64,000 nucleotides of DNA from Blastocladiella emersonii ATCC 22665. Its lineage: Eukaryota > Fungi > Blastocladiomycota. Shown here one piece after another: positions 3,944 through 43,234 of this stretch (position 1 is its first letter; every line of letters starts with the position of its first letter). The stretch covers positions 682,001 through 746,000 of the forward strand of contig JANHCV010000005.1 in NCBI GenBank assembly GCA_025594325.1. The letters are read 5' to 3'. The translations under genes were made by a program, and so were the position numbers. Under the pieces are notes generated by a model that did no database searches, had not been told where the DNA came from, and saw only the letters and a list, made by a program, of their open reading frames with translations.

Positions 3944-5134
3944 TCAGCCCCGTTGGAAAGATCGTTCAGCTTCGCCACGCTTCTTGTCCTTCACCTGCAA
4001 GGTATCGTCACCCTGTGGCAGGTCGAGGCACTGTTGGCCTCGCTGGTGACGACGGCTGGGACCAGGAGCGCTGCGGCGGCGGCCTAAAGGAGGGACGCCA
4101 ACAAAGTCGGGCGGGCGATCGACTTGGGAATGGACGGCGGGCTTGACCTGCGCCGGAACAACGACATTCGGAAACCGATCAAACAACGGTAAGAAAAACT
4201 GGTGGCCCTGATCGACTGCAGCAAAGACGTAGAGATTACGCGTCTCCGCTGACATGTGCGAGGCGTGATCGAAAACCCAAACGAAAAGCTCCAGGGAGGC
4301 AACAACCCCGGCTTGAAATGCGGGCGCGTGTGTAATTAGACCCGCTGGTAGCTCCGTGCAAAGTATCGCGGTGACAGCGTCAACGTCTACGGTGTAGCGA
4401 GAATCGCCAAGGAGGAGCTTGAAGCAGGGAGCTTTCCACGACAGCGCTGCGTGAAACACGAGCGCGTCCACGAAACGGACAGAGCCCGACTCGCCGGTGA
4501 AGTTGTCGGGATTGCTCGCGGAATAGTTTTCGCTCAGGAGAGCCCAGTCGCCGAGGCCAGCGCGAATATCGAGAAGCCACGGGCACTCGGCGAGAACAAC
4601 TTCGAGCGTCTCCTGCAAGAAGTTCGTCCAGCCGTACATGGCGCCGCCGATCAGGAGCCGGATAAGCGCAAACAGAGGGCGCTTCCAGATAAAGCACCAC
4701 CCAAAGTACGAGTCCTGCAAGAGTTCAGGGAACGTCTCCGTGTCAAAGTCAGTGGGCCGAACGCGGCGACACACGTAACCGGCGAGTGCGATGAGGACTT
4801 GAGTCGGCGGGGACAAGCCCTCGTAGCCCCAGTCGCGAGACCCAGCGCGTTTTACTTCGGGAGGATTGAGGTCCGCGTCGATGAGCCGACCGATCTCGAT
4901 GCTGCACGGCAGGTCACCGTGAGCGTCCGCAGAAACAATTCGAGCCGTAACGGAGACAGCCCAAGCGAGTCGAACAGACCCGTCGATAGCAAGCGCGTGA
5001 AGTGAAGCTGAAGCAGCCGCGATCGCGAGACGGGGCTCCGCGATTTGGAGGATCGCGACCACCAGTTCCGCAGGAAGCCGAGCAGGGATATAGCAGCCCG
5101 GGTCCGTTTCATGCGTTTTCATCAAGTTATTCAT
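3944..5134 (-). pseudogene. F-box-like family X, copy A: N-terminal half only, with recognisable homology lost after about aa 330
   Basis: ARLPAELVVAILQIAEPRLAIAAASASLHALA and RFVDALVFHAALSWKAPCFKLLLGDSRYTVD align with the intact copy at 37514; the C-terminal CxxC domain is absent. Confidence 0.7.
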
Positions 5135-5385
5135 GTTTCCGTGGGGGTTGGGCGTTCGCAGTGAGAGGGAGTCGGAGCGACCAGCCGAAGCGGGCGAGGC
5201 GAGACGCGCGTCTCAGCTTCGCCGCCGCCTCGTTCCAAGCGTCGCTCCACGCGTCTCAGAGCAACTCGCGGGTCATAGTCCGAGATATGTGAACAAAATG
5301 ATCGTGATTACCCTAAGTGACTGATGAAGATGATGATGTGGGTGTGCCATGATACACTACGGGCCTCGGCCCTTCGACCGCAGCC

Positions 5386-6985
5386 TTAGCGCTGCAGCGA
5401 GTCGAAGCGCGGGGGCGTCGGGTGGGACTGGGCCGACTCGACACACATGACGGGGAAGTAGCCGGTGATAGCAGGGCGGCCGGGCTGGGCGTGGCGGGTG
5501 CCCTGGGCCCACTGGTCCGTGTACCGGATGTGCACCGTGACCCAGTCGCCGTGCGCGAGCTCGATCTCCTCCATCTTGGTCGGCGCGAACGCCTGCAGGA
5601 CCTGCGCGACGGTGCACTCGGTCGGCTGCAGCGCCGGGTCGAGCGGGTTGACGGGCGCGGGGACCGCACCGGCGCCGACGCGGCCGGCGCCGCCCATCGC
5701 GGCAGCACCGACGACGCCGGCGGTCATGGCGGGGGCCGGCGCCGAGGGACCGTGCGAGACGAGTGGCTGCTGCTCGGTGCGCACGGGCCGCGCAATGGTC
5801 ATGTCGTTGATGGGCTCGATATCCTTGGCCTTGCGGCGCGTGAACTTGAGGGCGGCGAGGCCGATGACGCAGGCGATGCCGATGACGATCAGGACAATGA
5901 ACCCGGGCTTCATGCCCTGCTTGCAGGGGACGCGCTCGTTGCCGTCGCACGTCGGGGTGGTCTCGGTGGTAGGCGCGGAGCTGGCGGCGAGGAGCGTCGA
6001 GCAGCGGTCCTTGGACAGGTTGGAGCACTTCTGCTTGCACGCGGTGAGCTCGTCCGTGTAGCCGCACAGGTTGATGCCGTCGGCCATCTCGTTGAGCTCG
6101 CCCGAGATGCAGGTGCCGTTGTTGGCGCGCCACGGGTGGGCCTTGAGCTCGGCAATGTGCTTGTTGCTGATGGCGCGGCCGGGCTCGCCGACGGGGCACA
6201 TGTTCGAGTTCTCGAGGTCGAGCTGCAGCGAGTTGGCGCGCGAGTCGAGCGTGGTGCCGCACACGAGCGGGGTCTTGGGCCCCTTGGCGCACGGGTCGTT
6301 GCGGTCGGTGAAGAACTTGAGAATGTCGATGCAGAACCACGTCTTGTACCACAGCTGCGACGGCATGGTGCACCCGGCCGTGGCCAGCATGTAGTCCTTG
6401 GCGTAGAGCGACATGTACGAGTAGTTGGCGCCCGCGTACACGGCGTCGAGCTCGGTCGAGTTGGCCAGCGCAGCGGGAATCTTGTCGGGGTTCTTGGACG
6501 GGAAGCGCGCGTCAAAGTACGGGCGCAGGTTGATCGGGAGGTACTGGCCCGTGAAGCCTACACGCCACGAGAATCGATCAGCGGGCGATTCACGCACACG
6601 CGTGGAGCGAGTGCGGGGGATCGAGCGTACCGCGGCACACGTTGGACACCTCGAGCACGAGGCACTCGTTGTCGCCGCGCTCGCTGACCTTGCAGCGGCC
6701 GGCCTTGCACGGGTCCGTGGCCGTGGGCGTGGCGGTCGGCGCGGCGGTGCCCGACGCGGTGCGCGACGAGGCCTGCGACGCCGTGGTCGACGAGGGGCGC
6801 GCCGAGGTGGTGGGCTGCTGGTTGGTCGCGCCGCCACCCGGCAGCACCGAGGCGATAGGGCCGGGCAGGTTGGTCGGAATCGGCAGCTGCGGCAGCGCCG
6901 CAGCGCGCTCGGTGGCGGTGGCGGCCAGCAGGACCGCGGCGAGCGCGAGGAGCGCCGTGGCGCGGGCGATGCGAGGGAGTGCCAT
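5386..6985 (-). CDS. Signal peptide, S/T-rich linker, Cys-rich ectodomain, TM helix and cytosolic SH3; exons 6985-6631, 6557-5386
   Basis: Signal peptide MALPRIARATALLALAAVLLAATA; many spaced Cys; TM GFIVLIVIGIACVIGLAAL; SH3-like FAPTKMEEIELAHGD...DQWAQG...GYFPVMCV; 73-nt GTACGC...TAG intron. Confidence 0.85.
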
Positions 6986-7755
6986 GATTGCAAGGCGAGC
7001 GAGGGGGTCCCAGTCGCTGGCTGGTGCGGGAGGAGCAGCCCGCGGCGAGATGTGCAAAGATGCAAGGATGCAAGAAGCGGAGCCGAGTTCCAGCGAGGGC
7101 GCCACCGAAGGATGGAAGTCGAAACGGCGGCGAGTGGGTTGCTGTTGCTGCGGTCGGGTGCAGGCGCGAGTGAGGAGCTGCGGATGCCGGTTCGGGGGAT
7201 GGCTGCTGCCGCTGCGTCAACTGCGGCCGTGCTCGAGGGGATCCGTGCGCTGCGTGGGCGTGGTCAGTGGCCCCTGCGAGAAGTGGAGAGCGCGGTGAGC
7301 GTGGCGGCCGCGACGGGGGCGCACCGAGAAAAACCCACGAGCCGGAGAGGAAACCGCACATCCCGTGACGCGCCTGCCACCCCCGTTGCTCCGATCACCG
7401 TCTCGATCAAAGTCGCGTCGCGCGTCGCGCCTCGCTGCATCAGGCGTGATGAGTTCCAGTTCGTCCCACTTCACAGTTTGACGACTTTCTTCTGGAGGTC
7501 CGGGATTGATTTTATGAGGGAATTGTTGGTTTTCCGCCAAGAAAGCACCTGACGACGTTGGCGTTCGCGTCGCACGCTATGATCCAGCTTGAGATCTTGA
7601 GCGAGCTCGATTCTTTGGGCACGGAACAAGAGAGCTCGGATGAAGCAGACCTATGGTGGAACGATCGCGAAGGATAAACGTGCGTTACGGTGCCCACGGC
7701 ATGTCGCTGACAGCAACACGAGATACTCCCGACCGCGCCCGCGACGACCTCCCTG

Positions 7756-8894
7756 CAGAGCCCCACATTATAATGGATCCACTTTTAATGTCGGCATATC
7801 CATTAATCCGGCCCTGGGCCATTAAAATCCATTATTTTCAGGTTTTTGGTCGGACCCGGGTAAAGTGCGTCATTGAGGCGCGGAAACGGCCGTCTCGCGC
7901 CGCGGTGGCTCAGTTTTGGTCGCTCGAAACGAAGTGGCGTCACTCTGGGACCACCCGCGCGTGCGGCGCCCGAGTCTCTCGCACGACGCGTCGCGTGCCT
8001 CGCATTCCGAATGCGACTTAAGTCGCAGCAATCAATGCTGCCGTCAGCAAGCTTCGTTTGGGAACGCGCGATCTGGAGCAGCTTCGACAATTGACCTGCA
8101 CTTCAGTTAAGAGTAGCTTGGCTGCTGCGATTAGCTCGGATCACTACTCCCGTCTCAGCAGGCCGCTCCGTCTGAACGGACCTGCGAGCCGCTCATAGTG
8201 ACATCTAGCAGCAGGGCAGGTCGATCCCGTGGATGTAGTCGGACGGTGCAACCAAACCGCAGCGTCATCTAAGCGCGGACTAGCAAGGCGAGCGGGGCGT
8301 GCTCGCCTGGATCAAGCAACAAGTGTCCCTCAGCTCAACGCCCGATCGCGCAACGTACATGTCGGGTAGTGTACAAGCTCGTTCCTATCGTCTCGGACCC
8401 CGCTGTCAGCGAATAGCGCACACACAACACTGTGCGGAGCGTGATGATCAACATGATGGCCAACTGTAAGCGAGTCACGCTGCGACTTGCGAAACGAGTC
8501 GAGCGCAATTCGCTCACATGCCTAGCATGGACATCAAGAGCGCCAAAGACAGTTCCAAGTCTAAGGTATGCGCGACGATGACCGTCCTGGAACTGCAACA
8601 GACGTACAACTTGCGCAAGCTTCCAACGCAGTCTGCTGGTCGCATCTTGTGCAGTACTCAGCGCAACGACACGCTTCAGCGCGTCACATCGCATTCGTGC
8701 TGCCTCCGGACATAACCCCTGCTTGATCTCATGCTTGGGAGCAGCTCGACGCGTCCCGCTCTGCATTGCGCCACACACGTGACCGGTTTCCACGCGTTTT
8801 TGAGGCCATTTTTGGCCGGCCATTAAATTACACTATCCGAATGCCAGACATTATATTATATGGACTTGGCCACCCATTATAATGTGGGGCTCTG
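7756..8894. mobile_element. Putative non-autonomous DNA transposon (MITE-like) with 21-bp perfect terminal inverted repeats
   Basis: CAGAGCCCCACATTATAATGG (7756-7776) is the exact reverse complement of CCATTATAATGTGGGGCTCTG (8874-8894); AT-rich subterminal zones; no intact transposase; no 8-bp TSD (only TG flanks both ends). Confidence 0.65.
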
Positions 8895-9686
8895 TGCTGA
8901 TCCCAGACGACTTGAAGAGGTTAGCGCAGAGTGCGACACCAAGTATCACGCGAATCATGCTCCACTTCCGCATTTTACTGGTAGGAAGACATAATGTGCT
9001 GGTGCATTGCGGGGCGGTTGAGTTTGCTTGTTTGGCGGAGTCTGGGCGGGATGGGAACCGACGCGTCAAACAATCACGTGTGCGTGTCTCGCGTGGGTGT
9101 CTCGCATTGAATCCCGCGCTCATTCAACCGGCTTGAGTCGCCCGGCTTGACGAGACTGGTTATACCGGTTATATGCAAGCCACAGCCTCTCGTGCTACTC
9201 ATTTTCTTGAAGATCCGGGAGAATGCACGTGTGCCGTCAATGACAGCGCCTGTGCGTTTCACAGAAATGCGGATGCCCAACTGGCAGCATGCGGCGCGAG
9301 CTTCAACCGCACAGCCCCATAAAGAGCCAGCCCACCTCGCTCACGTATGGAGTGAGTGTTCCTCAGGACACTTTCGCAAGTCGCAGCAGCAGCTTCAACA
9401 GTAAGCAACGAATAACTGACCGCCATTTCATCGCAGCAGCACTGGCATGCCCAAGGTCTCTCCAATGGAAGGCGACAGCCGGTGTGGTGAATGGTCGTGC
9501 CGCGTGGCTCAGCGCGAGACGGTTCAAGTCAAGCCACGTCCCACGCGACGCGTTTCCCATCGCGTCACGCGACGCCACTCGGACGCGTTCCCCCTCCTCG
9601 TCACCGCTGCCCGACGCGTCAACTCGGCCGCGGGCCTCGAACCGAGCCTTCTCTCCGTCTGCTGTTCTACGAATCACACGTAACAG

Positions 9687-10463
9687 TTGATCGGAGCGTC
9701 GGTTCGGAGCTCGAGTGCTCACGTCGTTTGTTGCGCAGATTCTGGACTAGACCTCTTGCAGTACCTCTCGGTCCCCGGTCCCCCAACACCGGGCATTGAT
9801 TACCGAGGCCTCTTCCCTGCTCAAGGAGGCCTCCTCGCTGCTGAACGAGGTCTCGACCCTCCAGCAGCGCGGACATGCGATTCTGATGCGCAAAACGCTG
9901 CCAAGCAAGCTTCACCTGCTGCTTCTGAGCGCAATGACATGCGCCGTCAAGGTCACCCGACCGCGTTTCGGTTTCTTGCTCTTACTTCCGAGGCGGTCGA
10001 GTCAATCCACTCCAAAGTATCTATGCCAGTTGAAGCAATGGCTTTTGTACTCTTCGTCTCGGCCTCCTTCCCGTGGTACTTTGCTCAAATCTGGTTACTT
10101 TTGTTCGAGCCATTCCAGGACTTCCGTTACGAAACCAAACCTCCGCCACCTGTGCGACTCGGAGACTGCCGCATTGCAGTCCGGATGATGCGCAACCTGA
10201 TCAGCGCTGCAATTGTCATCGCCCTAGCCGTTATGATCTGTGTCCTGCAGTGTGACACTGCATCCCAGATGATCGTTGCGTTTGCGGGCGGGTGGTTCCT
10301 TGTAGCGATGCTCCTTGGCGCCGCCATTAAAGTCGTGTATCCTCCTAATCGAGTCCCCGCAGCGAACCGTCCCGCTTCGGTTGATTCTAGCCCAGCCGCA
10401 CCAGTCAACGATGCAAAATGTCCTTGCGGCTGCGAATCTTCACTGTACGTACTTCTCTTGTAG
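9687..10463 (+). CDS. Hypothetical protein with about three hydrophobic segments; start uncertain
   Basis: 258-codon ORF with hydrophobic stretches AFVLFVSASFPWYFAQIWLLLF, LISAAIVIALAVMICVL and IVAFAGGWFLVAMLLGAAI; no recognised family. Confidence 0.35.
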   Translation: MIGASVRSSSAHVVCCADSGLDLLQYLSVPGPPTPGIDYRGLFPAQGGLLAAERGLDPPAARTCDSDAQNAAKQASPAASERNDMRRQGHPTAFRFLALTSEAVESIHSKVSMPVEAMAFVLFVSASFPWYFAQIWLLLFEPFQDFRYETKPPPPVRLGDCRIAVRMMRNLISAAIVIALAVMICVLQCDTASQMIVAFAGGWFLVAMLLGAAIKVVYPPNRVPAANRPASVDSSPAAPVNDAKCPCGCESSLYVLLL

Positions 10464-10912
10464 TTGTCCCTGCGGAGTACCACTCACTCCCGCCTGCTAC
10501 TGACAAAAAACGATAGCTACGGTGGAGAGTTCTTTTGACTTTTCCTTACGCGCGCGCGTGCCGCTGATCGCGCCACATCTCTCACCGCCGCGTTTACCAC
10601 TCAACCATGCTCCATATCAGTCTCGCCGCCCAGCGAGCGATCGCGTTTCAGGTCAGATTGTGGCGCAACGCGTGTCAGCTGATGTGGCGCATCGCGTCTC
10701 GAGGTTTGCCAAATGCAGTCACCGAAGCTTCCCGTTAGCTATCAACGTTCCTCGCGTTTTCTAACCCTCTGATGACGCACATTTCGCCTTCAAACATGCT
10801 TACAATACCAATGCTCGATTACATGACAAGCCAGTAAAATGCAGGAGGGAACCCAAAACATGCGACCTTCAAGCGCACGCGCCCGGTGGCGCAGAACACG
10901 TACGACATATTG

Positions 10913-11530
10913 TCACAGGTTGAGAGCGACCAGTTCGTGAGTGGTCGGTGCAACTCGCTCAAACTCGCGAACGACCCACGCCGCGTCAGCCGCAGAACCC
11001 ACAGAACGCGAAGACAGCGTGCGGACGAGTTCCGCGAGCGCTTCCGGCGTGGCGAGCGCGTCTAGCGCGCCATCGGGGAACATGCGCAGGACTTGCACCA
11101 AGAGACCGTCGTTCAAGTTGAACTCGTCGTGAAGCGTGTCGAACACCTTCTGCGTATCGCTTACAAGAAGCGTGCGCACGATGAGGCGAGCAGAAGCAAT
11201 CGGATCGCACTCGAAGTGGCTCGACGTCAAGGCAGCCAAGTCACGTACAAGATAGTGCTCGTAAAGCAGCGACAAGAAATTGTCAACATCCGGGACGAGC
11301 GATTTCAAGAAGTAGGGCGGGCACTGCATCAATAGCGTATCAAAGAGATCGCGCCAGACCCGCTGAAAGGCAAGCGGGCAATCCAGGCAAACCGTGTGCA
11401 CGGAGTTGCAGACGTAATGGAGCCGCTTCGGCGTGTGCGGGACCCCAGCGGGCTTGCTCCATCCAACTGAGCAGCCGCGAAAAGCCAAGTAAGGTCGACG
11501 GCCACGGACCAGCGTTCGTGCTCGTATTGG
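10913..11530 (-). pseudogene. Family X copy E: 5'-truncated C-terminal fragment with a frameshift near 11480
   Basis: VCLDCPLAFQRVWRDLFDTL, DTQKVFDTLHDEF, FPDGALDALATPEALAELV and REFERVAP match the C-termini of the copies at 18321, 38920 and 40958; WSVAVDLTWLF lies in another frame upstream. Confidence 0.75.
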
Positions 11531-14441
11531 ACTAGCGAACCGCCGCGTGACGCTCGACGCCGCTGACTTGAGCTGATCGTTCGCGTCGCGTCGCGCCGCG
11601 TCGCGGCGTGTCGTGTTGTGGCTGGCCGGAGCTTGGTGGTCGTCAACCGACGGGGAAGACCACCGCGCGCGCGTGGTGTTGTCGCGGAAGTCGAGCCGTC
11701 GTCATTGAGAGCACAGCACCGTGTTGAGCGTGAGCTTGGCCATGGACCGCAGTTGATGAAGTCGATGATCGAGACGGTGGCGGCGGCCGTTGCAGTTCTG
11801 GAACGACCAACGTCGAGGCGCCCTGCCGCTTCTTGAAGTCGTCAAAGAGGGGGGAAATTGAGCTTCGACAAGGGCAACGAGTGCGTGAGGCTCAGCCCGG
11901 CTCGACCTGGCGCCACGCGTAGCGTCGGTCGGTCGAGGAGTCGTGGTGTCGTGCTCGCCCTAGCTCCGAGCGACGCGTCAGTCACGTTTCTGTGGGTGGC
12001 AGCAAGCACTTTGCGCGTACCGTACGCTACCCCGCGGCTCGGCTTGAACTTGGTGCGCGTGGTCTCGGGGATGGACGACGACGATGGCCAGCTTGGACTG
12101 CTGCTGCTGCTGCTGCTCCTTGCTGGACAATCCGCGGCCCGAGCGAGTCATCATGGTCACGCCCATGGCCATGGCCGCGCGCTGGATCTTGATCAGCTAG
12201 CGAGTCCTCGAGCCAGTGCGTGCGTGTCGAGCTTCTCGATGAGCGCGAGCTTGCCTACGCCGGATGCTGCTGCTGCTGGCCTTGAACGCGCGCATACTGG
12301 TGCTCGGGTCGCCGTGTGTTGCTGAGGAGCACGAGTCGCCGGAATCGAGAGTCACGGCGAGGATCTGGAGAAGAAATGCAGCATCAGCGAGATGTGAGTG
12401 CTCATCAGTGATACTTTTCGCGTCGACCTAAGCGAAGCGACGACACGTACCATTCATTCAGGGCAATGTACGCCGCCCGCCGTCTTGGACTTGCGCCACA
12501 CGGTCGTTCGAGGAGCGTCATGCCGTACGTGGAACGTGAGCGTCGAGCGCGGCCGACTTGCGGCGTCGGCGTAGCGTGTTGTTGCCGCAGTAGTAGCCGA
12601 GCGAGTCGGTCCCTCGAACTTGCGCGCACAACTCCCGCCGCGGGCAGCCGCGCAACGGATACTACAGGATCGGACATGGGTACGCGATGAGTGCATGGCG
12701 GCCACTACGAGACCATGAAAACTCGTACCGTCGCTCTGCTTGAGAGGCAAACGTCGAGAGGAAGCGGCCTCGCTGCGAGAACTGGGCGAGAAACACGAGG
12801 AGCAGTTGATGATCGCGGAACAGCCCGTCATCGCCGCAGCCAGTACGCCCGAGTGCGAGCTCGAAGTTGTCGCTGCTACGCGGAAGCCGCCGACCCAGGT
12901 CAGTGACAAGCCGAGCGATGGATGTCGTGAGCACACGCGCACCGGAACCGATCAGCAGTCGCTACTGAACGTACGCGATCCGCGTCGAGCTTGACCTGCA
13001 TCTTGACGCATCGATCCCAGACGGCGACGCGGTTCGATGACAGCGCCGCGAGTCGGAGCATGTACCAGCTGGACGGTGAGGAGGAGGAGCGTGGATGCCT
13101 GCTTAGAACGATGTGCGCCGCATCAGCAGACGCCGCTAAGCGTGCCCTTTTCGTACCAGATGTAGCAAAGGTGCCGCCGCCGAACATGACCGCGAACTCG
13201 AAGATTGTCGCTGGCGGGGAGGCAGGGATCGTGATACGGTAGTCATGTGGCCACGCCCGATCAGCACACACGGACGGACGAGCGGGTCAGTATCGACGGC
13301 GCGGGACTGGTGCGACTACTCGCGTACCCGTCCATGGAACGGCCGACCGCGTCCGAGTACGCGGTCTTGCGAAGAGAGTGATCTCGCGCGTTGTGCGACG
13401 TGGGGCGCGGGTCGCGAGCACGACGAGTAGTTGTGGGTGATGTTGCAGGGACACGCGTGCGGAAGGGGAAGGGTTGATGGCATTGCAAGGAGTCGACGGG
13501 TTGTGACGAGAGAACAAGTTTTCCGACGCGTCGGCGCGACGCGTCTCTGGATACAAGCGCGGGTGGCGCGTCTCTCCGACGCGTATCCGACAGCTGCGAG
13601 ACAATTTTGCGCGCGCACCTGACTCCCGGTGACCGTCATGCAGAGCGACTTTCGCCTCGCGTCGACCTCAGGATCACCAAACGAGGCTCCACCAAGTCGC
13701 TCATGCTGACACGGGAGCTCATCGCGTGCACTGGCACGGCCGTGGACCCGTCGAGTTGTTCCACGATGCGCGCGGGTGAGCGCGTTGCGCCACAGCCGCA
13801 CGGGACACGCCGTGGCGTCACCGCGCTTCTCACCCACGCTGACGACAGCGGCCGTCCCGCCCTCCGTCTCTCCCTCGCCGGCGCGTTCACAGGCGTCTGA
13901 GGGTGCCATGGACCGCAATAAACCTCCGCGACTGCCCGCAACGGCGCCCCCGCGGCCGCCCTTACCGCCTGCCGCCTCTGCACGCGCGGGACACTGTGTG
14001 TCGGTTCGGGTCGCCGCGCGGGACTCGATCGGCGGTCGTAACTCTGCGTGACGCTCTTTGGGACGCCCTGACACGGCCGAGCGAGGAGATCGGGCCCCGA
14101 GTGGACGCCACGAAACGCCCCCTGTGCGCATCCAACGGGCACGATCGCCACCGCTCTCTGCACTCGCAGCGCTGCTCGGATCCGCTTCATGTCCACATCG
14201 ACTTCATGCCGCTCAGTCGCGAGCACAACAACTCGATCCATCTCGCGGCTCCCCGCCCATCCCGCCCTGCCGCATGTCGCTCGCCTCGCGACCCCACCTC
14301 ATCGTCGGCGGGTCCGACGGTGGAAGCCTTACATTTTGCTGCATGACTTCAAGGGAGAGAACTTGATCCGACGAGCGTTGCAACTGCTCAACGACGTCCA
14401 CGGACGCCTTCCGATGCAACGCGCACGCCGTTTCCTCTCGA

Positions 14442-14471
14442 CGCGTCGCGTCGCGTCGCGTCGCGTCGCGT
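14442..14471 (+). repeat. (CGCGT)6 tandem repeat; a related imperfect tract lies at 11582-11605
   Basis: Read directly from the sequence. Confidence 0.9.
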
Positions 14472-16265: not shown

Positions 16266-17885
16266 ATGAAGACATCGTTTAAGATACCGCACTTGACCGA
16301 CATCGTCCTATGCATGGCTGTGTCGCTCGATCCGCCGTCCGACGTGAGCGCGGCCCGCAAGTATCTGCGCGTCATGCCGCGTGCTCTCATCCCCGACACC
16401 TATCGACTCGTGGCCCAGTCTATTTTGTACCCTTGCTGGGGAGCGTTCATGTCCTCGAGCACCAAGACTTCCAACTTTGGCATCATGTTGCTCGCGCCCG
16501 ACATCGAGTCTGACCAAGTCACCACCCTCGAAATCTATACCCGAGACATATCCGATTGGGGTATTCGTCGGCTTGCCAAGGCTTTCAGCGGCGCCTCGCA
16601 GTGCATTACAGACGTCTCGCTCGTCAACTGCGGCCTTGAACTTCACCACGTCCGCCTCCTCCAGCTTCCCAGTACGGTTTTGCATCGCAATCTCTCTCAT
16701 AACCCGCTGGGCGCGACGGACGCTCGGCAGCTGGAGCGCAAGATCAAGCCAATCAAGCACACCCGTTATTGCCATCGTCTTAACGGAGGGCGGCCGAAAA
16801 ACTGCGAAAGACAGTGCGCTCAGCAGAACATGATCCGCATCCAGCATAACCAGGACATCGAGTCGCAAATTGAGTCAATCGACAACACCGCCTTCGAAAT
16901 CGGCAACTGGCTTCCTCCCGCCTTGGTCACCTTGACTCTCCGTGGCATCACGGGGCCCGAGCAGACGCTGGTGCCGCTTTTCGAGATCGGCCCGTTCCCC
17001 GCCACGCTCGAATCGCTAGACCTTGCGCAGAACGACCTCATTGATGGGGCCTTTATAGCCCTCAATGCTGCTCTCCCAACCGGGCTGCAAACCCTCAATC
17101 TCGACTCTTGCCGCCTCAGCGAAGCCTCATATGATGAATCCAACGCTTTGCCGCCTTCCCTTACTTTTATCAACCTTCGGAGCAACATGTTGATGGAAGA
17201 AGCCTCCTTCTTTCTCTCAAAGTACCTTCTCCCGAGCCTGACCACCCTGATTCTCACTGGATACGGAGTTGATTCCTGGCTCGAGCTCGCCCCACTCCTT
17301 CCACCGCAGCTCGAGGTGTTCAAGCTCATTGACCACTTGCCCGAGGACGACCACAGTTACGCGCGGCACCAATCGGACGAATACGAGGTGCTGATTGACG
17401 CGCTTCCTAGCACGCTTAAGCGACTCGCGCTTAACATGTATCCCGCGCGCTACGACCGGCCGTTCACCTATTTGGTCGAGCACCTTCCGCCTTGCCTCAA
17501 GACGCTGGACATTTCCACATGGGCCATCAAGCGCCGCGGCCTCTGGGCGCTCACGCGGTACGCGCTCCCGCACACGCTTACACGAATCAACTGCTGCGAC
17601 CGCGCGGGTGACGAGTTTTTCCAGGTCCTTGCCCGCCGGCTGCCCACCACGCTTACCCTGCACAAGGCAGGCGATCAGCCGCGCACTTGGATGGGCCAAG
17701 GCGATTCAACTGGGCCCGTGTGGAAATTCTGCCGCGACCCAGCTGACGACTCGGGCGACGAAGAACCGGGCCGCGACCATGGACTCGAGTACTGGGAAAC
17801 CGGCTCCGACCATGGTAGTAGTCATGAACTCGAGGAATCGGAGCTCGAGGAATCGGAATTCGATTCAAGCGAGTATAGCGAGTAA
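16266..17885 (+). CDS. RNI-like leucine-rich-repeat protein with an acidic tail
   Basis: Intronless 539-aa ORF with repeats LESLDLAQNDL, LQTLNLDSCRL, LTFINLRSNML, LTTLILTG, LKRLALN and LKTLDIS, each preceded by LP/FP. Confidence 0.8.
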   Translation: MKTSFKIPHLTDIVLCMAVSLDPPSDVSAARKYLRVMPRALIPDTYRLVAQSILYPCWGAFMSSSTKTSNFGIMLLAPDIESDQVTTLEIYTRDISDWGIRRLAKAFSGASQCITDVSLVNCGLELHHVRLLQLPSTVLHRNLSHNPLGATDARQLERKIKPIKHTRYCHRLNGGRPKNCERQCAQQNMIRIQHNQDIESQIESIDNTAFEIGNWLPPALVTLTLRGITGPEQTLVPLFEIGPFPATLESLDLAQNDLIDGAFIALNAALPTGLQTLNLDSCRLSEASYDESNALPPSLTFINLRSNMLMEEASFFLSKYLLPSLTTLILTGYGVDSWLELAPLLPPQLEVFKLIDHLPEDDHSYARHQSDEYEVLIDALPSTLKRLALNMYPARYDRPFTYLVEHLPPCLKTLDISTWAIKRRGLWALTRYALPHTLTRINCCDRAGDEFFQVLARRLPTTLTLHKAGDQPRTWMGQGDSTGPVWKFCRDPADDSGDEEPGRDHGLEYWETGSDHGSSHELEESELEESEFDSSEYSE

Positions 17886-18320: not shown

Positions 18321-19992
18321 TCACAGGTGAAGTCTGACCGCCTTGCTTGCTTCCGGCGCGATGCGCGCGAACTCGCTTGCGACCCAGTCCAAATCCGCGG
18401 TCGGGTCATCGTTTGCGAACAGCTTGCAAACCAGGTCAGCCAAGTCCTTGGGCTCATCGAGGCCGTCCAGAGCAACTTTCGGAATCAAGCGCAGAATGGC
18501 GACCGTGATCCCGTTGTTGGCTGCGAACGCCTCGTCGCAGAGTCTGTCGTACGCTTGCTGCGGATCCACCGTGAAGAGAAGGCGCGCGATGAGCCGAGCG
18601 GATTTGAACTGGTTGTATGCGGTGCAAGCTGGTTGATCCGTGTGGTCGCGGCCGATTCGCGCAAGCTCGCAGAGCCGCGCCCAAACGTTGTCAACGGCGA
18701 CGGGAAGGAAGCCCTCCAGGCTGATCGACCCGCCCAGCTTTGCGAGTTTGCGAAATGCTTTGCGCCAAGTCTTGTGCGAAAAGGTGTGGCAAGTAGGACA
18801 GGTCGGAACGTTAAGGCCGAGCAGATGGACGGTAGACTCAGCCGTGTGAGGCTGAAGTGCGCCCAGGGCCATGACGAGCAAGTAGAGGCGAAGTTGCGCG
18901 CCGAGTTCACCTCGGCACATACGGCTCTTGAGCCAATGCCACCTTCCGTAGACGTGGAATGCGGACATGACGAGCGAAGCGATATCGAGCGACGTTGACC
19001 ATACCAGAGCCCGGTTCGACGGGTTGGAAGAAAGCACTTCGTAGGGAGACCTCGTGTCCGACGTTGACAGCAAAGTGCACATAGTCGTCACACACGGCCC
19101 CGGGCAGTTGCGAAACGTGTTCGACAACCCAAGCCAAGAGGTGGTTGAAGCGCTTGGCAGCGTACAAGGTGCCCGCGGCGGCCATTCCTACGTGAAGCAC
19201 GGGGCTGAAGGTATTCTTGGCGCGGAGCAAGCAAGAAAGAGCCGTCACATCCACCGCTAAACAAGGGTCCTCGACAAGCTGTCAAAAGGTTGAGTGTTTC
19301 CACGACATGAGGGCAAGATACCCGAGCGCGTCGATATATCGGAGCGGAGTCGAAACGGCGGGGTAGGCCGCGAGGTCGATCGTGAAGTAATCATGAACGA
19401 GTGATAGCCACTCGCTGACCTCGAGCTCGACTTGGAACAGCTGCGGCATCGCGGATGATACGTCGTTGAGAATGTGCTGCAGTGGATCCGTCCATTCGAA
19501 CACGGCAGAAGCGAACATGATCTGCACAAGCGTGGCCAGCGGGTTCATGATGATCGGGTTGGTCGCCTGCATGGCCGACGTGCGAGCGAGACGCGCGCGG
19601 AGCGCGGCCGGGTTGATATCGCTCGCTCGGACACGGCGACGCGCAAGTTCGGCCAATGTCACAAGGACGGGGGTCGGCGCTGCGGCGTGGTCGCAAGGCT
19701 CACCACTAGGGTCTCGAACGATCGTCCGAAGATCAAGCTCGAACCCCAGCAGGCGATCGTAGGCGACTCAAGGCGATGGAATTACCAAGTCGTGCCACTT
19801 GTAAAGCCGGCCCACGGCGGTGATACACCAGACCATGCGAGTGTGGTCATCCAGAGCAAGAACATGAAGCGACGCTGAAGAGGCTGCGATCCTCGCGCAC
19901 GGTTGCGCGAGGTCAAGGACGACGGTCACCAGTTCCGCGGGAAGCTGTGCAAGCGAGAGCTGGCCGCCTGGGCCTAGTTCATTTGTTTGCAT
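18321..19992 (-). pseudogene. Family X copy B: two in-frame TGA stops plus a large internal deletion with frameshift
   Basis: Starts MQTNELGPGGQLSLAQLPAELVTVVLDLAQP; TGA at 19768-19770 and 19282-19284 with homology continuing in frame; near 19050 it jumps from VHFAVNVGHE to VLSSNPSN; ends EFARIAPEASKAVRLHL. Confidence 0.85.
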
Positions 19993-20242
19993 CTAGTCGT
20001 TTCTCCTTGCTGCATGAGTTGGGTTCAGGGTCGGAGAGCAAGGATGCTCGCGAGTCGAGCAGGAAGCGGCCTGAGGGCGGCAGCCTGCAACGACGACTGC
20101 GCCATCCACGGGAGCCTTTTTCGTCACGACCTTACTCGTGCCTGAAGCCACGTTGAATGGGTGAACAAGTAGTATCTTAAGGTCAAATAATGCGAATGGG
20201 GGTAGGGGAGAGAAGACGAGACGGAGCAGCAGCCGATCAAGC

Positions 20243-33598: not shown

Positions 33599-33674
33599 TG
33601 AGGAGGGGATGGGGTACACAAGGATTCTTATACGTAGCGGGATGAACAGGTAGGGGGGTAGGGAACAGACAAAG

Positions 33675-34788: not shown

Positions 34789-36042
34789 ATGAGCGACGAG
34801 AAGCCCAAGACGCGGCGGCCCGCCAGTCCGTTTCTCCCCTTCCCTTACGATCTGCGTGGGACCCCGTAGCTCACCGCCGCGCTGTGTGTAGACACGGCGT
34901 TCAAGCAGCAGCGGCTCAAGGCGTGGCAGCCGCTGCTGACGCCCAAGTCGGTGCTCCCAACGCTGTTCATCCTCGGCGTCATCTTCGCGCCGCTCGGCGC
35001 GTTCCTGCTGCACACGTCCAACTCGGTGACCGAGCTGATCATCGACTACACGGACTGCGCCGTCGACGCGGGCACCGCGTTCCGCGCACCGTCCAAGATG
35101 GTCACGGCGTTCAGCGCGCCTGGCGTGTCGGGCAGCGGCGACCTCAACTTCCAGTGGAAGTACAAGAACGCGACGACCTCGTCCGCGAGCGACCGCAACA
35201 CCTGCACGGTCCAGTTCAACCTGCCCGTGGCGCTCGACAAGTCCGTGTTCCTCTACTACCGGCTCACCAACTTCTACCAGAACCACCGCCGCTACGTCAA
35301 GTCGTTTGACGCGGCCCAGCTCAAGGGCCAGCCCGTCACCGCCGCCGCCGTCAAGACCAACTGCCACCCGCTCGGCCAGATCGGCGACACCAACGCCATG
35401 TACTACCCGTGCGGCCTCATCGCCGACTCCATGTTCAACGACACGATCAAGGACCCGGTGAGCAGCTCGGGCCAGACCTACACCTTCTCGCCCAAGGGCA
35501 TCGCATGGCCCGCCGACGCCGCCAAGTACGGCGCCCCCGCCAACTTTGACCCGGCGACCCACATCCCGCCGCCCAACTGGGTCAAGCGCTACAACAACGG
35601 CACGGGCAAGTACGACAAGGCGCCCGACCTCGCCAGCGACGAGCGGTTCCAGGTCTGGATGCGCACCGCGGGGCTGCCCAACTTCCGCAAGCTGTACGGC
35701 CGCAACGACAAGGACATTCTCGCGGCCGGGACTTACACCATGGAGATTGAAGACAGTACGTTTTGCCCGCTCTCGCTTGACGATCGCTCGCGCTCACTCA
35801 CACTCGCGCCCGCTCTCGTAGACTTTGAGGTCAAGTCGTTTGGCGGGACCAAGTCGGTGGTCATCTCGACCGTCTCGTTCATGGGCGGCAAGAACCCGTT
35901 CCTCGGGTACGCGTACATTGTCGTCGGCGCCGTGTGCATCATCCTCGCCGTCGTGTTCGCCGCGCGCCACCTCTACTCGCCGCGCAAGCTCGGCGACCAC
36001 ACGTACCTGTCGTGGAACCACCAGCCGCCGCCGGCCCAGTAG
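34789..36042 (+). CDS. CDC50: Cdc50/Lem3 flippase beta subunit; exons 34789-34825, 34892-35755, 35822-36042
   Basis: P.NTAFKQQRLKAWQPLLTP, YYRLTNFYQNHRRYVKS, YYPCGLIADSMFNDT, FQVWMRTAGLPNFRKLY and GGKNPFLGYAY. Confidence 0.95.
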
Positions 36043-36120
36043 TCGTAACCTGTTCGTCGTTTGCTTCGCGCCCTCTCGTTCTCTTTGTGTCTTGCTGCTC
36101 TAAAATACAGATCTATTCAC

Positions 36121-37176
36121 TCACTCGAACAGCCCGCCAAACTCGTCGCTGACGCGCACCCGCCGCTTCTTTACCACCACCTCGTCCGCGCGCGCAACCA
36201 CCCGCCGCGCCTCGTCCCACAGGCAGTACGGCAGCCCCGCGACCGCCTCCCACCACGCGACGCGCGGCACCCCGTCGAACCACGCGCCCGCCGCCGCGTG
36301 GCACTCGGCCAGCGCGTAGCACGGGACCCGCGCGTTCAGGTGGTGCACGTGGTGGAACTCGAGCCCCGCCGTCACCCACGCCGCCCAGCGGGGCAGGACG
36401 AGGAGCGACGAGCCGTGCACCGCGCTCGTCACGGGGTCCCAATCCCCCGAAAGCGAGGAACGGCCGCGCCACGTCCCGCGGAACGTGTGCTGCACGTTGA
36501 ACAGCAGCATTCCGATCCCGGCGCCCGCCGTCGCCGTCGCGAGATCCCACGCCAGCGTGCCCCGCGCGGTGTGCGCGAAGATGACCAGCACCTCGATCGC
36601 CCACTCCCACCAATTGACGCCCGGCGCGACCTGCTGCGCGACAAAGTAGAACGCCGCCGGGACCACGCCGGATAGGAACGCGGCGCGGCTGTGCATCCCG
36701 GCGTATGCGGCGCGCGCGGGCCACGATGCCGCCGCGTACCCCGCCGTCGTCCACCCGGCGTCCAAAGCGTCCAGGTCGTTCACATGCAGGTGGTGGTACC
36801 CATGCGTCCGCCGCCAGAAGCTCGCGGGCGTGTACGCGGCGGCGGGCATCAGGAGCGACGCGCCGACGTGGTTGAGCGTGGGGGAAGGGAAGTACGCGCC
36901 GTGCGCCATGTCGTGTGCGAGGATGAACAGGCGCACGCGCAGCGCGACGGCGAGAGGGAACGTCGGCCATAGCGCGAGGTATTGCAGGCCGAGGTACGGG
37001 AGCAGCGTGATCAGGAGCTCGAAGGTTGAGCGGGACCACGACTGTGCGCCCGCGTACGCCGCGGCGTGCGCGCGCAGCGCCGCGTGATACTCGCGCGGGA
37101 CCGGGCACGCGAGCGGGAGCGCCGAGAGTGGCAGCTGGGCGAGCGGGGAGGTCGGCGAGGGCGCGGTAGCCGGCAT
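36121..37176 (-). CDS. Membrane fatty-acid desaturase of bacterial Des/DesA type; intronless
   Basis: His boxes FILAHDMAHGAYF, WRRTHGYHHLH, LFNVQHTF and FHHVHHLNARVPCY. Confidence 0.9.
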   Translation of the reverse strand: MPATAPSPTSPLAQLPLSALPLACPVPREYHAALRAHAAAYAGAQSWSRSTFELLITLLPYLGLQYLALWPTFPLAVALRVRLFILAHDMAHGAYFPSPTLNHVGASLLMPAAAYTPASFWRRTHGYHHLHVNDLDALDAGWTTAGYAAASWPARAAYAGMHSRAAFLSGVVPAAFYFVAQQVAPGVNWWEWAIEVLVIFAHTARGTLAWDLATATAGAGIGMLLFNVQHTFRGTWRGRSSLSGDWDPVTSAVHGSSLLVLPRWAAWVTAGLEFHHVHHLNARVPCYALAECHAAAGAWFDGVPRVAWWEAVAGLPYCLWDEARRVVARADEVVVKKRRVRVSDEFGGLFE

Positions 37177-37513
37177 CCTGGTTGCTGTGCTTGCTGGTCA
37201 GGGCTGGCGGGAAGGGCGGGGGCCGGGGGATTTGTACGCACGACGGGCCGCGCTAGTTGCCAGCGCCGCCGTGTAGGGCGGATCGGGCCGCGTTGCATCG
37301 AGTCGCGGTGTGTTCATTGCATGATATGCCACGTTCTACTCGGGGATCGTGGAGAGGAGAGGGCGGCGCGTGGCGAGATGAGCCACACGACGGGCGCGGC
37401 GAGGCCTGTCACAGCAATCGTGTTGAGAGCCAGCCCACAGCCAGCCCATCACGCCTCGTCAGGAGCGCCGTAGGCTTCCACTCCCGTAGTCGACGCTCAC
37501 ATCAGCAACTGCC

Positions 37514-39854
37514 ATGATAGACCTGATGCAAACGAATGAAAACGATCCGCTTGGCTTGGCCCAGCTTCCCGTAGAGCTGGCGAGCGTCGTGCTCCAACTC
37601 GCGGAACCGCGCGTTGCGATCGCGGCCGCCTCGACCTCGCTGTACGCGGCCGCTCTCGACCACCATGTTTCCTCGACTTGGACTATCGACGCAGTCACTC
37701 GTTTTGCCACGTGGGACCTCGACTGCTGGGTCCCCTCGCCCTGTGCTGCAGCGGGCCGAGTTCTCGGCTTCAAGCGCAAACCTCGGCTGAAAGGCGAGTA
37801 CGCCAAAAGCGGCGAACCGTTCGACCACGCTCCGCCGCCCACGTCGCTTCTTGTCCACTTGGCCACGGTCTTGTGTCGCAAAGCGCGGACGCACGACCTC
37901 GACTTGGCGACGCTCTCCCAGCGCTTGATGACGTTGCGCTCCAACCGGTCCAACCGAATTCTCAAAAACCCGCTTCCCATTCTCGCGCAGCTCTTGATCG
38001 CGGCCGTCGTGTTCGACTGGTCCGATTCCCTGCAGCCGTCTCTCGACATTGTTTTCGCCGCGGTCCCCGAACTGCTCGAATTCAAGCTACAGCTTGCGGA
38101 ATGGCTGACGCTCGTCCACGGCTACTTTCCAAAGTCTGTCGAGGACGAGGATTTCCGGAAGTTGGTCGTACCGACTTGCCCATTGCGACTCATCGACGCC
38201 CTTGCATTTTTTGCAGCCTTGTCATGGAAATCTCACCCCTTCCGAACGCTAACTGACAATGCACGGTATGGCGTGGACACGATTACGCTCGCAGCACTCC
38301 TGTCTACAGAGGGACTATCGGGTCTACTGCTAAGCGTCGCACGCATCATTGACTCAGAGGTCGGCCTCTTCGACGCCGTTAACCGTTTCAAGGACATCTT
38401 GCTTTGGATCTTCAGACGTGTACCCCAAATGCCGACGACGGTCCGAGATGCTTACGTCCACATGGCGTTCAACGCGCTGCCCGACACCTTCTTCCCGCTC
38501 CTTGAGCAGTCTCCGGCCCAAGTTGTGGCCGCTTTCCCCATCGACCCACAACTCCAGGATACATGCATTGCTCTTTGGGACAACCATCTCGATGATCGTG
38601 TCGACGAAACCTCTCGTCAAGCAGGGGCGCACATGGCTGCATCCTGGTTTTTTCAAGGTCTTTCGCCCCAACAGATCGATCTGCTGGAGACCCACCAACT
38701 CTTCGCGCCCAAGTGGCATACTCTCATGATCGGCTGCGTCATTGCTTGTTCCACGCACAGCGACAAAAACGACGAGTATCTGCAGAGGATCCTCGACCGA
38801 TACATGCTGCCCGAGGGATGGAATGCGACGATATTGGCGGGTACGCACGGATTCTCATCGTCCCTCAAAATTTGGCTTCACGACTCACTCGTCTGGCGTG
38901 GATGTGCGCGCAATTGTAGCTGCTCGCGCCCATCGTTGGTGGTGCACGCGAGAAATTTACCGCATCCTTTGGTACGCGCTCCCGCCTGGTCGCGGCAGCG
39001 CGTGTCAGCTCACGTTGACCGACTTTCTCGACGACTATGTCAAACACCTCCGTGCGGAAGGGCTTGGCAATACGCCAATTGATTTTCTTTTCAACGAGCG
39101 CAGCGGCCTTGTGCTCCCTGATGACCACATTGAGTACCTGGCCTCGAATCCGCAAAATTGCGACGTGATCCAGTCCTCGCTCGATCTCACTTTGCTTTTC
39201 TTCGTTGCGTTTTCTGATTCCGCGGCCCGGCACCGCCTCATTAAGGCTATGGAGTGGGAGCGGCCTCCTGTTGCGCACCTGTACCTCCGCATCGTCATGC
39301 AAACGGTGTGCGTGCCCAACATGGGCCTCATTGCGCGCAAACGACTTGCCTCCCTGCATGCAACCAACGTCCAACTCTGTCCCGAGTGTCCCCTTGTCGC
39401 ACAGCAGCGTGTCTGGTGCAACATCGTGGAGACGCTGTTTGACCTGTGCAAGCCGGCGCATTTGAGTGCAGCCTTCCCGTCCATCAACAACTTGTGGTCG
39501 CACGTCGGCGTCGTGGAAAAGGATTGCTCCTGCAGGCCGCCCATCTCGACCTTCCCCATCGTGCACGTGCTATTCAGTTGCGACCCGCAGCGGGCGTTTG
39601 ACACGCTGCACGCCGAAATCTACTCGGACTCGAGCTACTTCTCGATCTACCTCTTGGACCACGTCCCGAGTGGCACCGTTGACAGTCGCGCCGAACCACA
39701 GGTGATCGCAAACATGATCAGACACCTCTACTTTAAGGTTGGAGCAATTTGCTTCGCGGACTGGCTTCATGAGCATTTTGTGCGGCTCGCACCCGAGGCC
39801 GCCAAGGTTGTCACGCTTGACCTGCGCTCACCTGCCCCGCTGGGCTCCGCTTAA
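37514..39854 (+). CDS. Family X copy C, the only intact member (about 753 aa): F-box-like N-terminus plus unknown helical and CxxC domains; exons 37514-38840, 38920-39854
   Basis: LAQLPVELASVVLQLAEPRVAIAAASTSLYAAALD. A 79-nt GTACGC...TAG intron (38841-38919) joins ORFs 37514-39082 and 38742-39854 in frame. Copy D has a phase-1 intron at the same site. Confidence 0.8.
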
Positions 39855-40261
39855 CTTTAGTGCTAGCGCGTGTTTGACCTGAAAGTCGGCTGCATGTTCT
39901 GTTGTTGTTGTTACGTTCCTCTTCTAGTTCATAAAATGATTTTAAGTTGATTTCCACGCGTGGCGAAACGTGATTTACATCGACCGGACGCGAACAGATT
40001 CATATAGCGCGTCGATCAGGTGCACGTGGCTCACATGATATCGCAACGCGTCGACGCGACGCGTCTCCGTTTGAAACGGCTTCTTCAATAGCTTGACCAC
40101 AATCGCTATCGATCCACAATGTCAGTATATAGAAGAAGTAAACGATTGTATTGAGCAAGTTTGTGAGAAGTGGATTGCTAAAAGTCGAGGTTTCTTCAGT
40201 GCCTTGCGAGCGATTCCTTGATCCGCGTCGAGCCGTGCCCGCGCCAACATCTGAAAATCAA

Positions 40262-40700
40262 TCAGCAAGTGAGTTTTGCGAGAAAATCAGGGTCCACCAG
40301 ACCGTCCAGCGCGCCGCTTGGTATCAGATGTAGCACGTCCGACGAGAGGGCGCCAAACACGACCTCGTCCCTGAGCGACTCGAACATGCGATCGCGATCG
40401 CTTCTGAGCAGAATGCGCACGACGAATTGAGCAGTCCTAAACTTATTGGACGGCGCGCAATCGCACGCGGCGCCGCGGTGATGGACTTCAGCGTGTCCGC
40501 ACAGCCACGACCAAACCTTGTTGACGCGCGGAAGCAGCGATCCAAGCCGCTCTGTGTCGCAAGACTCGAGCAAAAAGTTGACGAGGAGGCGCCAAATTTC
40601 CTGGACCTCGAGCGGGCAGTTGGAACAAACTCCTGCTGCACGCTTGTTCAAGCAGCGGTGCCGCTCGGGCTCGCACGAGAGCCGAAAAGACAGGCGGCAA
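40262..40700 (-). pseudogene. Family X copy F: C-terminal fragment in tandem behind copy D
   Basis: VCSNCPLEVQEIWRLLV, DRDRMFESLRDEV and IPSGALDGLVDPDFLAKL, then TGA at 40262-40264. Confidence 0.75.
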
Positions 40701-40957
40701 CAGAGCTAGTGTGGGGTGCGATTACAGCGCTGACCACTTTGTCCAATCGCAAGCCGTCGACGCGTATTCGAGTTCGCGAGCCCTCACAGCTCGCACTTTG
40801 CCCTCGTGATAACTGGTGAGTCGTTGGCGTCGTCTCGCGACTCGCGAAGCAGACGTGGCGAAGAGTTAAAAGAGTAGAAGGTACAAGAACGTTGATGTCG
40901 TGATAGAATTCATGTATTCGGCTCCCACAAATGATCAAGAAACGCGTTTCAAGTGCT

Positions 40958-43234
40958 TCACTTGAGTTCGGCCAACTTGGACGCGTTGGGCGCGAGCCGC
41001 GCAACCTCTCGAGCGACTAGACCTAGATCAACGGCCCCATCAGAATCGGCAAGCAGCTTGCGCACGAGGTCCAACAATTCGCTTGCCGATGCGAGTCCAT
41101 CCAGCGAGCCATCGGGAAGGATACGTAAAATTTCCTTGGATACGCCGCCGCCGTGGATCTCATCCCGCAGGGCCTCAAACGATCGCTGCGGGTTGCTTTC
41201 GAACAGGGCGCGGGCAAAGCACCGAGCGGAAGCGAGTCGGCCGTAAGAGCACAATGGTGTCCCAGCGTTGCAAACGGCGATCGTCTGGCACAAGCGCGAC
41301 CACAAACGATCAACATTTGGAGCAACCGAGCGTAAGTGCTCCAGACTGCACTTACTGGATAGTTTGTCGACGAGCTCGCGCCAATGGCTCTCCGCGGTCA
41401 CTGGGCATTTGTGGCAAGACGTGAAGCTAATGATGTACCTCGACTCCGCGTCTGTGGCGCCCTCGGGCGGAAGCATGGCCAGAAGCAACGCGCGAAGCAT
41501 CAGGTGCGCAGTCCCCGACTATTCAATAAGCTGCACGGTCTTGTTCGCATCCAGGTTTGCCATTGAGAAAACCAAAATCGTCGACAGATTGTTTGCTGTC
41601 GACCATGGAAGGGTGCGCGCTTCGAGGGAGTCGACCAGCAAAGCGAGAGTTTGGTCGTCAAGGAAGAAGTCGGGGTCGTTGTACTTGCGGCCGACTGACT
41701 TCTCCATGTAGTCGCGAATGAGGTCGTCGACCGTCAGTCGGCTGTCGCTGACCCGCTTCCGCCACGCTCGATGGAGAAGCGGAGGATGGCGTGGCCAATG
41801 CGGTGACGCTCCTGGGCGATCCGGCAAGCATCGTACGCTACGCGGACGAAACAGGTCAGTAGACTGGTCCGTTGAGTTCTTGGAGAGATGAGCGCGCGTA
41901 CCGTCCAGCATAAGGTGCTTCCAACTCTCGGGAGAATGCCGCTCGCGGAGTCGCGCAAGAAAGGCGAGCTCGTTTCGAGCAATCGCCGCGCCAAGCAGGG
42001 CGGGCCACCGCGCACGTGCGATTAGTCGATGTTTCTCGAGGAGCTCAAGGCTCTCAATAGGAAGATCGCAATCGAACCAGCGCACAATGAAATCGCCAAG
42101 CGGACAGAGCAAGACATCATTGCCCACGGTGGCAAGCATAAATATGGTTGCATCAAAGTCGTCGTCGTCGTCCTCGTCCTCGTCTTCCTCCTCCTCGGGC
42201 GTAAGCCAGTACGTGACTTAATCAGCAAACTGGGTTAGGAGCGGGATGAAGACCCTGTGCCCAAGACCAATGGCCAAGTGCACGAAGGTGACGCACGCGT
42301 GGAGCTCGACGGGACCATGCTGAAATATCCAGGCGAGGATGCCTGAGGCCCTTTCCACCGCGTCGACAACGGGAGCAGGTTTGGGCTGCTCGGCTCCAAC
42401 ATCGTGCATGACCAAGAACGAGTAGAAGACATAAATCGCGCCTTTTTGTCCAAAAAGCAACGACAAGAGTGCGGTGGTGTCAACAGCATATCAAGGGTCT
42501 CCAACGAGCAGCTGGAAGACCGAGCTCCTCCACGCCAGCACAGAAAAGTAGGCGAGCGCGTCAATGAGACGGACGGGCGACGTTGTCACGTCGTCCAGGC
42601 GAGGGAAGCGGTTTTCTGCGAGAAGGTCGTAAAACAAAGCGTCCCACTCCCCCAGCTGGAGGTCGCATTGCAGCAGGCGGCGCGATCCGGCAAGCGTCAA
42701 GTCGAGGAGCTGGCGTACGATGCTGGTATCTCCATCCAAGACAGCAGCCGCAAGGAGCCGCATGAGCGTCATTCGCGGGGAATGCAAAACGGGAGCGCTT
42801 ACATGACACAAGTCGCACGCGGGGACTTGCGAGACGACGCGGGTCGACCGGATTTGACGCAGAAGGAGGGCGGCGAGATTGACGAGAAGGGCCGCTGGTA
42901 CCGGATTGCGGCCGTCCGGCTTCATGCACGTTCCAGCCGGCAGATTGCGGATGAGGTCGGGGTCGAGCTTTACGCCAAGGAAGCAAGCCAAGTCGTCCTC
43001 CGACGAGCTCACGCTTTCCGTGAGCGCCGCGAGCTGGCAAACGAGGGCGACGGTCCAAGAGAAGCGAGTGAGGTCGTCGCGGGCAAACATGTGAAGCGAA
43101 GCCGACGATGCTGGGACAATACTGCGGGGTGCTGCGAGCCGAAGGACGACGCTCACAAGCTCGGCGGGGAGCCGTGCAAGGGCGAGGTCGTGGCTTTGCA
43201 TGTTTATTCCATCCGTTTGCATCAAGTCATTCAT
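40958..43234 (-). pseudogene. Family X copy D: full length but with three in-frame stops and one frameshift
   Basis: MNDLMQTD...LARLPAELVSVVLRLAAP; TGA 42491-42493, TAA 42218-42220 and TAG 41519-41521, each with homology continuing in frame; intron 41838-41901; frameshift near 41755; ends REVARLAPNASK. Confidence 0.85.

Follow-up and report, generated by a model that had tools for sequence, protein, structure and literature searches.

F-box proteins of the FBXO type (PF00646, PF12937) combine a conserved N-terminal head with a diverging body: a motif of about 40 residues, which starts with LP-x-EL, comprises three helices and carries a Trp about 38 residues after the LP, is followed by a variable interaction region. 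In nematodes (FBA2/DUF38) and plants (FBA/FBK), proteins of this kind have expanded by birth-and-death evolution into clusters with tens or even hundreds of paralogues, among which pseudogenes are common, and Skp1 expansions accompany these F-box expansions.

Here we examine a stretch of 64,000 nucleotides from the early-diverging fungus Blastocladiella emersonii ATCC 22665 (contig JANHCV010000005.1, C17 in our numbering, positions 682,001 to 746,000; hereafter the window), which holds six loci of a gene family comparable to both of these systems. The GC-rich genome amounts to 32.65 Mb, and its assembly into 21 contigs has been described (PMC9730499). An initial annotation of the window, made from the sequence alone, had taken the six loci for a lineage-specific family of F-box-like adaptors, locally expanding and decaying, with a single intact member. 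On balance, our analysis leans towards the family being substrate adaptors of Skp1-Cullin-F-box (SCF) ubiquitin ligases, which would couple a degenerate F-box to a helical recognition body that is new and diverges rapidly, and which would evolve by birth and death, the window being a decaying cluster with one survivor.

The N-terminal motif of the family shares with the FBXO type its length, the LP-x-EL start, three predicted helices, the Trp near position 38 after the LP and the placement ahead of a variable body; unlike the FBXO type, it fails the curated profiles, an Ala/Ser-rich sequence takes the place of the central Trp, the body matches no described domain and Skp1 binding is putative. 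With the nematode and plant expansions the family has in common its clustered paralogues, its many pseudogenes and a surplus of Skp1-like genes, but it belongs to an early-diverging fungus, its body domain is unrelated, pairwise ratios of nonsynonymous to synonymous substitution (dN/dS) give no sign of positive selection, and no link to immunity is known. The best match of the N-terminal profile in the PDB is the F-box of FBXW7/Cdc4 (5ibk_B), which is colinear with the family motif including the few residues before the LP; only 41 positions align, though, and the family lacks a WD40 domain.

The similarity of the family N-terminus to F-boxes is weak but consistent. Hidden Markov models (HMMs) of exon 1 and exon 2 (alignments A1 and A2) were built from genomic paralogues, and every search and fold was made exon by exon, the two exons of copy C, the intact gene of the window, being handled separately. 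Aligned by hhalign with a profile made of 20 bona fide F-boxes of B. emersonii itself, the family N-terminus reached a probability of 73% (P 3e-5, score 26.8, 40 columns, residues 14-53), as compared to scores of 8.2 +/- 1.8 (maximum 13.9) for 200 column-shuffled profiles and of 10.3 for the reversed profile, and the full-length family profile found its best match to the same F-boxes at the same place. The best match of an HMM of these own-genome F-boxes lay colinear at residues ~15-55 in 20 of 20 family members, and in the distant annotated proteins P0001 and P0007 this HMM scored 15.5 and 14.8 bits, respectively, across nearly the whole motif. The Pfam F-box-like profile gave E-values of 0.037 for P0001 and 0.073 for P0002, and by their sequences these more distant annotated branches look to grade towards canonical F-boxes. 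Among 177,635 PDB sequences, a profile restricted to the N-terminus (A3) ranked the FBXW7 F-box first (E 0.12), and a look-up of residues 1-75 with the ESM language model likewise placed F-box clusters first with a score of 0.92, which by the calibration of the tool is a lead rather than proof.

Conservation within the family points to the same region. No other block of the protein is as well conserved as the motif, which shows 50% pairwise amino acid identity versus 23-34% elsewhere, while identity at four-fold degenerate sites is 0.38 in the motif versus 0.33-0.36 elsewhere (0.28 being expected from composition). Since these sites are as saturated in the motif as outside it, the conservation reflects constraint on the protein and not recent gene conversion, which is thereby ruled out as its family-wide source. 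Leu29, Ser40 and Trp56 are invariant and Leu18, Pro19, Glu21, Ala30 and Pro32 nearly so; the L-P start, the hydrophobic pattern of the first helix and the terminal Trp of F-boxes are all present, Trp56 standing 39 residues past the LP versus 38 in the own-genome F-boxes. In the AlphaFold2 model of copy C, helices are predicted at residues 20-29, 32-48 and 50-65, at low confidence (predicted local distance difference test, pLDDT, 53-74).

Other results weigh against calling this motif an F-box. PF00646 and PF12937 match no member at E <= 10 (9 window open reading frames, 20 exon-1 and 13 exon-2 proteins), and a six-frame search of the genome with these two profiles retrieves ~40 true F-boxes and none of the family loci; the cut-off of the curated F-box profiles thus is not reached by the family. 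Searched against the PDB, the full exon-1 profile yields a chance match to a lipocalin and no protein with an F-box, the hhalign probability is no more than 73%, the FBXW7 match is not significant alone, and ESM scores of 0.9 come up by chance in 4-10% of shuffles. In the second half of the motif, the central Trp has been swapped for Ala/Ser-rich sequence. The exon-1 model is weakest precisely at the motif and yielded no superposition on an F-box structure, and whole-model fold searches returned no F-box chain among their matches. It could therefore be argued that the family is a species-specific helical-repeat family whose motif is an unrelated helix-loop-helix, serving dimerisation, targeting or partner binding outside the SCF pathway. 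The complete failure of the curated profiles would suit such a motif, as would a likeness that comes mostly from LP-x-EL and from the pattern of an amphipathic helix rich in Ala, a second half without the canonical Trp and the fact that each positive F-box signal is sub-threshold on its own. Nevertheless, three methods (hhalign, the ESM look-up and the PDB profile search) independently put the F-box first, the position, length and N-terminal placement of the motif suit an F-box, and members on distant branches come closer to canonical ones. We regard the unrelated helix-loop-helix as the less likely explanation, albeit one to be taken seriously, and the N-terminus as probably a divergent F-box, sub-threshold by curated profiles. 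The F-box proposed in the initial annotation accordingly fails with the curated Pfam profiles, but is partly supported in that hhalign, the own-genome HMM, ESM and the PDB profile together point to a resemblance greater than expected by chance.

The family reaches far beyond the window. A whole-genome search with one protein yielded 87 matches, and profile searches of the genome 98 or more for exon 1 and 122 or more for exon 2, both counts being lower bounds for which only part of the first-look candidates was scored. Thirty-seven of the exon-1 matches are free of stops over practically the full length of the profile; four further full-length ones contain stops. The family therefore consists of at least about 100 loci genome-wide, largely unannotated, and the description as a six-copy family with one intact member, valid for the window, has to be abandoned for the family. 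At least 13 paralogues are likewise split into two exons by an intron, mostly 57-86 nt long, whose position, phase and splice signals they have in common with copy C. Copies are found in tandem arrays as well as in segmental, often inverted, duplications, and paralogues share 25-45% amino acid identity. The dN/dS estimate, which the initial annotation had proposed together with the genome-wide count, is ~0.3, with values of 0.22-0.40 for those pairs in which saturation is lowest: the family is under purifying selection. Taken together with the decay seen in the window, the proposal of a lineage-specific family evolving by birth and death stands.

The youngest duplication is that of the inverted pair L004/L006 (C17:1886379 versus 1912127), with 87% identity over 4.5 kb, a dS of 0.63 and a dN/dS of 0.31; one of its borders lies 2.3 kb or more upstream, the other within exon 2. 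In the first 60 codons of this pair (L004:2377-2556), dS drops to 0.09, as compared to 0.66-1.06 in the remaining exon 1, which probably reflects gene conversion at the 5' end of these two genes. Mirror-image pairs of family matches, with identical scores on opposite strands, were observed on contig C11 (~1.959-1.971 versus 2.039-2.058 Mb; 0.551-0.568 Mb) and likewise on C17 (1.600-1.623 Mb; 0.900-0.928 Mb); they may be palindromes formed by inverted duplication on a large scale, or else errors of the assembly.

Upstream of the start codon, seven out of 20 intact paralogues (L002, L003, L007, L009, L010, L012 and L017) carry a rigid two-box element, ACGCGTCGA-N15-CACGTG, located 110-156 bp 5' of the ATG, which we consider a putative promoter-type motif. 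Allowing for one mismatch, the element has no match across the whole window, including the region upstream of copy C.

Within the window, the family HMMs were run against the six-frame translation and recovered all six loci at the places given in the initial annotation, with domain E-values of 1e-39 to 1e-151 that leave chance similarity far behind. Both the N-terminal pattern and the phase-1 intron shared by copies C and D proved to be real as well, and copy C is indeed the only complete gene among the six, both HMMs being matched end to end with no stop in ~753 codons. Its first exon (37514-38840, plus strand; 442 codons plus one base; exon-1 HMM positions 1-435, score 493.8) encodes a short N-terminal leader, the F-box-like motif and a helical-repeat domain; the motif occupies residues 14-56 (37553-37681, plus strand), with LP-x-EL, three predicted helices and the invariant Trp, the hhalign match covering residues 14-53. 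A phase-1 intron of 79 nt and the GT-AG type follows (38841-38919; donor G|GTACGC, acceptor TGTAG|C, as read off the sequence), and exon 2 (38920-39854, plus strand; exon-2 HMM positions 2-312, score 320.8) encodes a C-terminal helical domain of ~311 amino acids.

The remaining five copies, all on the minus strand, are in various states of decay. Copy A is truncated: its family portion (4148-5134, exon-1 HMM 1-339 of 435, no stop) lies inside an open frame, 3944-5134, which runs on to 3944 through unrelated sequence, and an exon 2 is absent. Copy B (18327-20001) is a pseudogene, in which exon 1 (19048-20001, HMM 2-323) has three in-frame stops and is separated from exon 2 (18327-19040, HMM 77-311) by an internal deletion, which removed everything between exon-1 position 324 and exon-2 position 76, intron included, leaving exon 1 without its end and exon 2 without its beginning. 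Copy D (40961-43234) is a full-length pseudogene with three in-frame stops in all, two in exon 1 (41897-43234) and one in exon 2 (40961-41755), and still has its intron at the family position. Copies E (10922-11455, exon-2 HMM 136-310) and F (40202-40678, exon-2 HMM 141-299, one in-frame stop) are lone exon-2 fragments. The closest pair within the window, B and C, shares only 41% amino acid identity, whereas the nearest relative of copy A is a paralogue on contig C3, L014, to exon 2 of which the stretch 10913-11453 of copy E is 78.6% identical in nucleotides over 541 nt. Because of these distances the cluster must be regarded as old and not as expanding, contrary to what had been assumed; it is a decaying cluster of one intact gene, two pseudogenes, one truncated copy and two C-terminal fragments.

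The alignment of the copy E region with L014 extends over 10913-11542 (L014:2369-3080), where a second block of 87 nt is 90.8% identical; this is far closer than any other pairing of window copies, and fragment E would seem to be an ectopic copy of fairly recent origin. Family copies at 8-12, 16-20 and 38-42 kb of the window lie in islands of lower GC content (0.56-0.59, with ~0.69-0.72 at third codon positions), which they share with a neighbouring leucine-rich repeat gene (16266-17885), while the flanking housekeeping-type genes have a GC content of ~0.72 and up to 0.92 at third positions.

The region behind the motif, which the initial annotation had described as unrecognised, remains so with regard to any specific relative. 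AlphaFold2 models of both exons of copy C are all-alpha, with a pLDDT of 76.5 and a predicted template modelling score (pTM) of 0.76 for exon 1 and values of 84.5 and 0.87 for exon 2, and the body is best described, as modelled, as a generic alpha-solenoid. Pfam scans at E <= 10 of the window copies and 33 paralogue domains returned nothing relevant, and searches with both domain models by Foldseek and VIA-align gave only generic solenoids of the HEAT, ARM, TOG and ankyrin type, with no specific match (Z <= 7.7 and <= 6.7, TM ~0.2-0.3, a range which the tool calls uninformative for helical repeats). The C-terminal domain contains a partly conserved CxxC...CxC cluster (in copy C at approximately 39378-39389 and 39522-39533, plus strand), of which C156 is invariant and one more Cys nearly invariant among 13 paralogues; these four cysteines may form a metal site.

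Two other origins of these proteins have to be weighed. The body might be a degenerate array of ankyrin repeats, in which case it would not be new and the family would count as an F-box-ankyrin class. In favour of this are the sole match outside Blastocladiella, a protein with ankyrin repeats (hhalign probability 53%, E 3.7e-4), and several ankyrin domains among the structural matches (Z 5-6). HEAT and ARM matches score equally well or better, though, no member has a Pfam ankyrin match (PF12796/PF00023), and the alignment with an own-genome Ank_2 profile (14.1, shuffles 11.2 +/- 1.9) is not significant; an ankyrin origin of the body thus is unsupported and, in our view, highly unlikely. Still less probable is that the copies are open reading frames of a transposable or other selfish element. 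Their high number and many fragments could be read in this way, as could the absence of the core members from the deposited proteome, for which repeat masking before gene calling is our guess, and the presence of short repeats and of a DUF6570 fragment nearby (an open reading frame of 160 amino acids, 57324-57806, minus strand, E 7e-21), DUF6570 being a domain that usually occurs with Helitron-like helicase elements. Pfam scans, on the other hand, revealed no transposase, reverse-transcriptase or integrase domain in the family proteins, which instead keep a spliceosomal intron at one position and phase, evolve with a dN/dS of ~0.3, are old as judged from their identity of 25-45% and share a promoter-type motif upstream of seven of 20 copies. 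Furthermore, the borders of the L004/L006 duplication differ from those of the gene and hence are not those of a mobile unit. We have rejected a transposon origin on the conserved intron, the dN/dS, these borders and the lack of transposase-type domains, and the open reading frames of a known transposon, which had been named as the alternative to an F-box family, are not what the copies represent.

Our preferred explanation is as follows. The family has spread by tandem and segmental duplication in B. emersonii, and an intact gene consists of two exons and is predicted to give rise to a cytosolic protein of ~750 amino acids, made up of a short leader, a probable divergent F-box of ~40 residues and ~700 residues of fast-evolving alpha-helical solenoid, the C-terminal domain of which bears the four-cysteine cluster. 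The F-box would dock on Skp1 or on an extra Skp1 paralogue within an SCF ubiquitin ligase, and the variable solenoid would pick the substrates. The Skp1 complement of the genome fits such a role, which is circumstantial evidence: it comprises 8-9 Skp1-like loci, some having been duplicated or carrying stops, and to our knowledge fungi usually have a single Skp1. The canonical Skp1 of B. emersonii maps to contig C15, at ~2,012,492-2,013,086. One of the Skp1-like genes is found in the window itself, 15 kb from copy D (58111-58728, minus strand), adjoining the DUF6570 frame; it is intact, encodes 205 amino acids (Skp1_POZ, E 4.5e-11) and is divergent in its C-terminal half, which does not match PF01466. 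The other Skp1 paralogues are not adjacent to family clusters.

In the databases searched, the family has so far been seen only in B. emersonii. A word-index protein search with the exon-1 open reading frame of copy C gave no match, and an exhaustive HMMER search of 1.84 billion representative proteins with the exon-1 profile found 18 proteins at E <= 0.001, of which 17 are hypothetical proteins of B. emersonii (locus tags H9P43_) and one, the only match from outside the genus, is a metagenomic ankyrin-repeat protein with a marginal E-value of 3.7e-4. The best of these database matches scored 151.8 bits, as compared to 389-594 bits for the profile's own members on the genome; the core members, copy C included, therefore are absent from the deposited proteome and the annotated matches are distant branches. 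General caution should be applied to the absence from other Blastocladiomycota proteomes, which is weak evidence because the home species itself is under-annotated. One of the annotated proteins, P0001 (KAI9173056.1, 1425 amino acids, contig C21), contains two family N-terminal motifs, at residues 6-54 and 694-736, and its deposited model probably fuses two tandem genes. A literature search found no paper that connects Blastocladiella with F-box proteins in this sense.

The best-conserved members of the family, including copy C, thus are missing from the public proteome, and proteome-based comparisons of B. emersonii consequently miss the family; gene prediction at these loci is worth revisiting, with attention to a possible role of repeat masking. 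A function in defence or host interaction, as suggested in the initial annotation, is not indicated by any of our results, and B. emersonii is a free-living saprotroph. One could still envisage, as a rather improbable extension, a surveillance system in the style of plants and nematodes but of independent origin, in which about a hundred fast-diversifying F-box-like adaptors, each with the new helical body for recognition, and a private set of Skp1 paralogues would destroy foreign (viral, mycoparasite or transposon) or stage-specific proteins; such a system would have been overlooked as the deposited annotation has no gene models for the core members. Should the F-box assignment be correct, few gene families of this early-diverging model fungus would be larger, and this one would represent an independent expansion of F-box adaptors, alongside an expansion of Skp1, in which the recognition domain has no match among described families.

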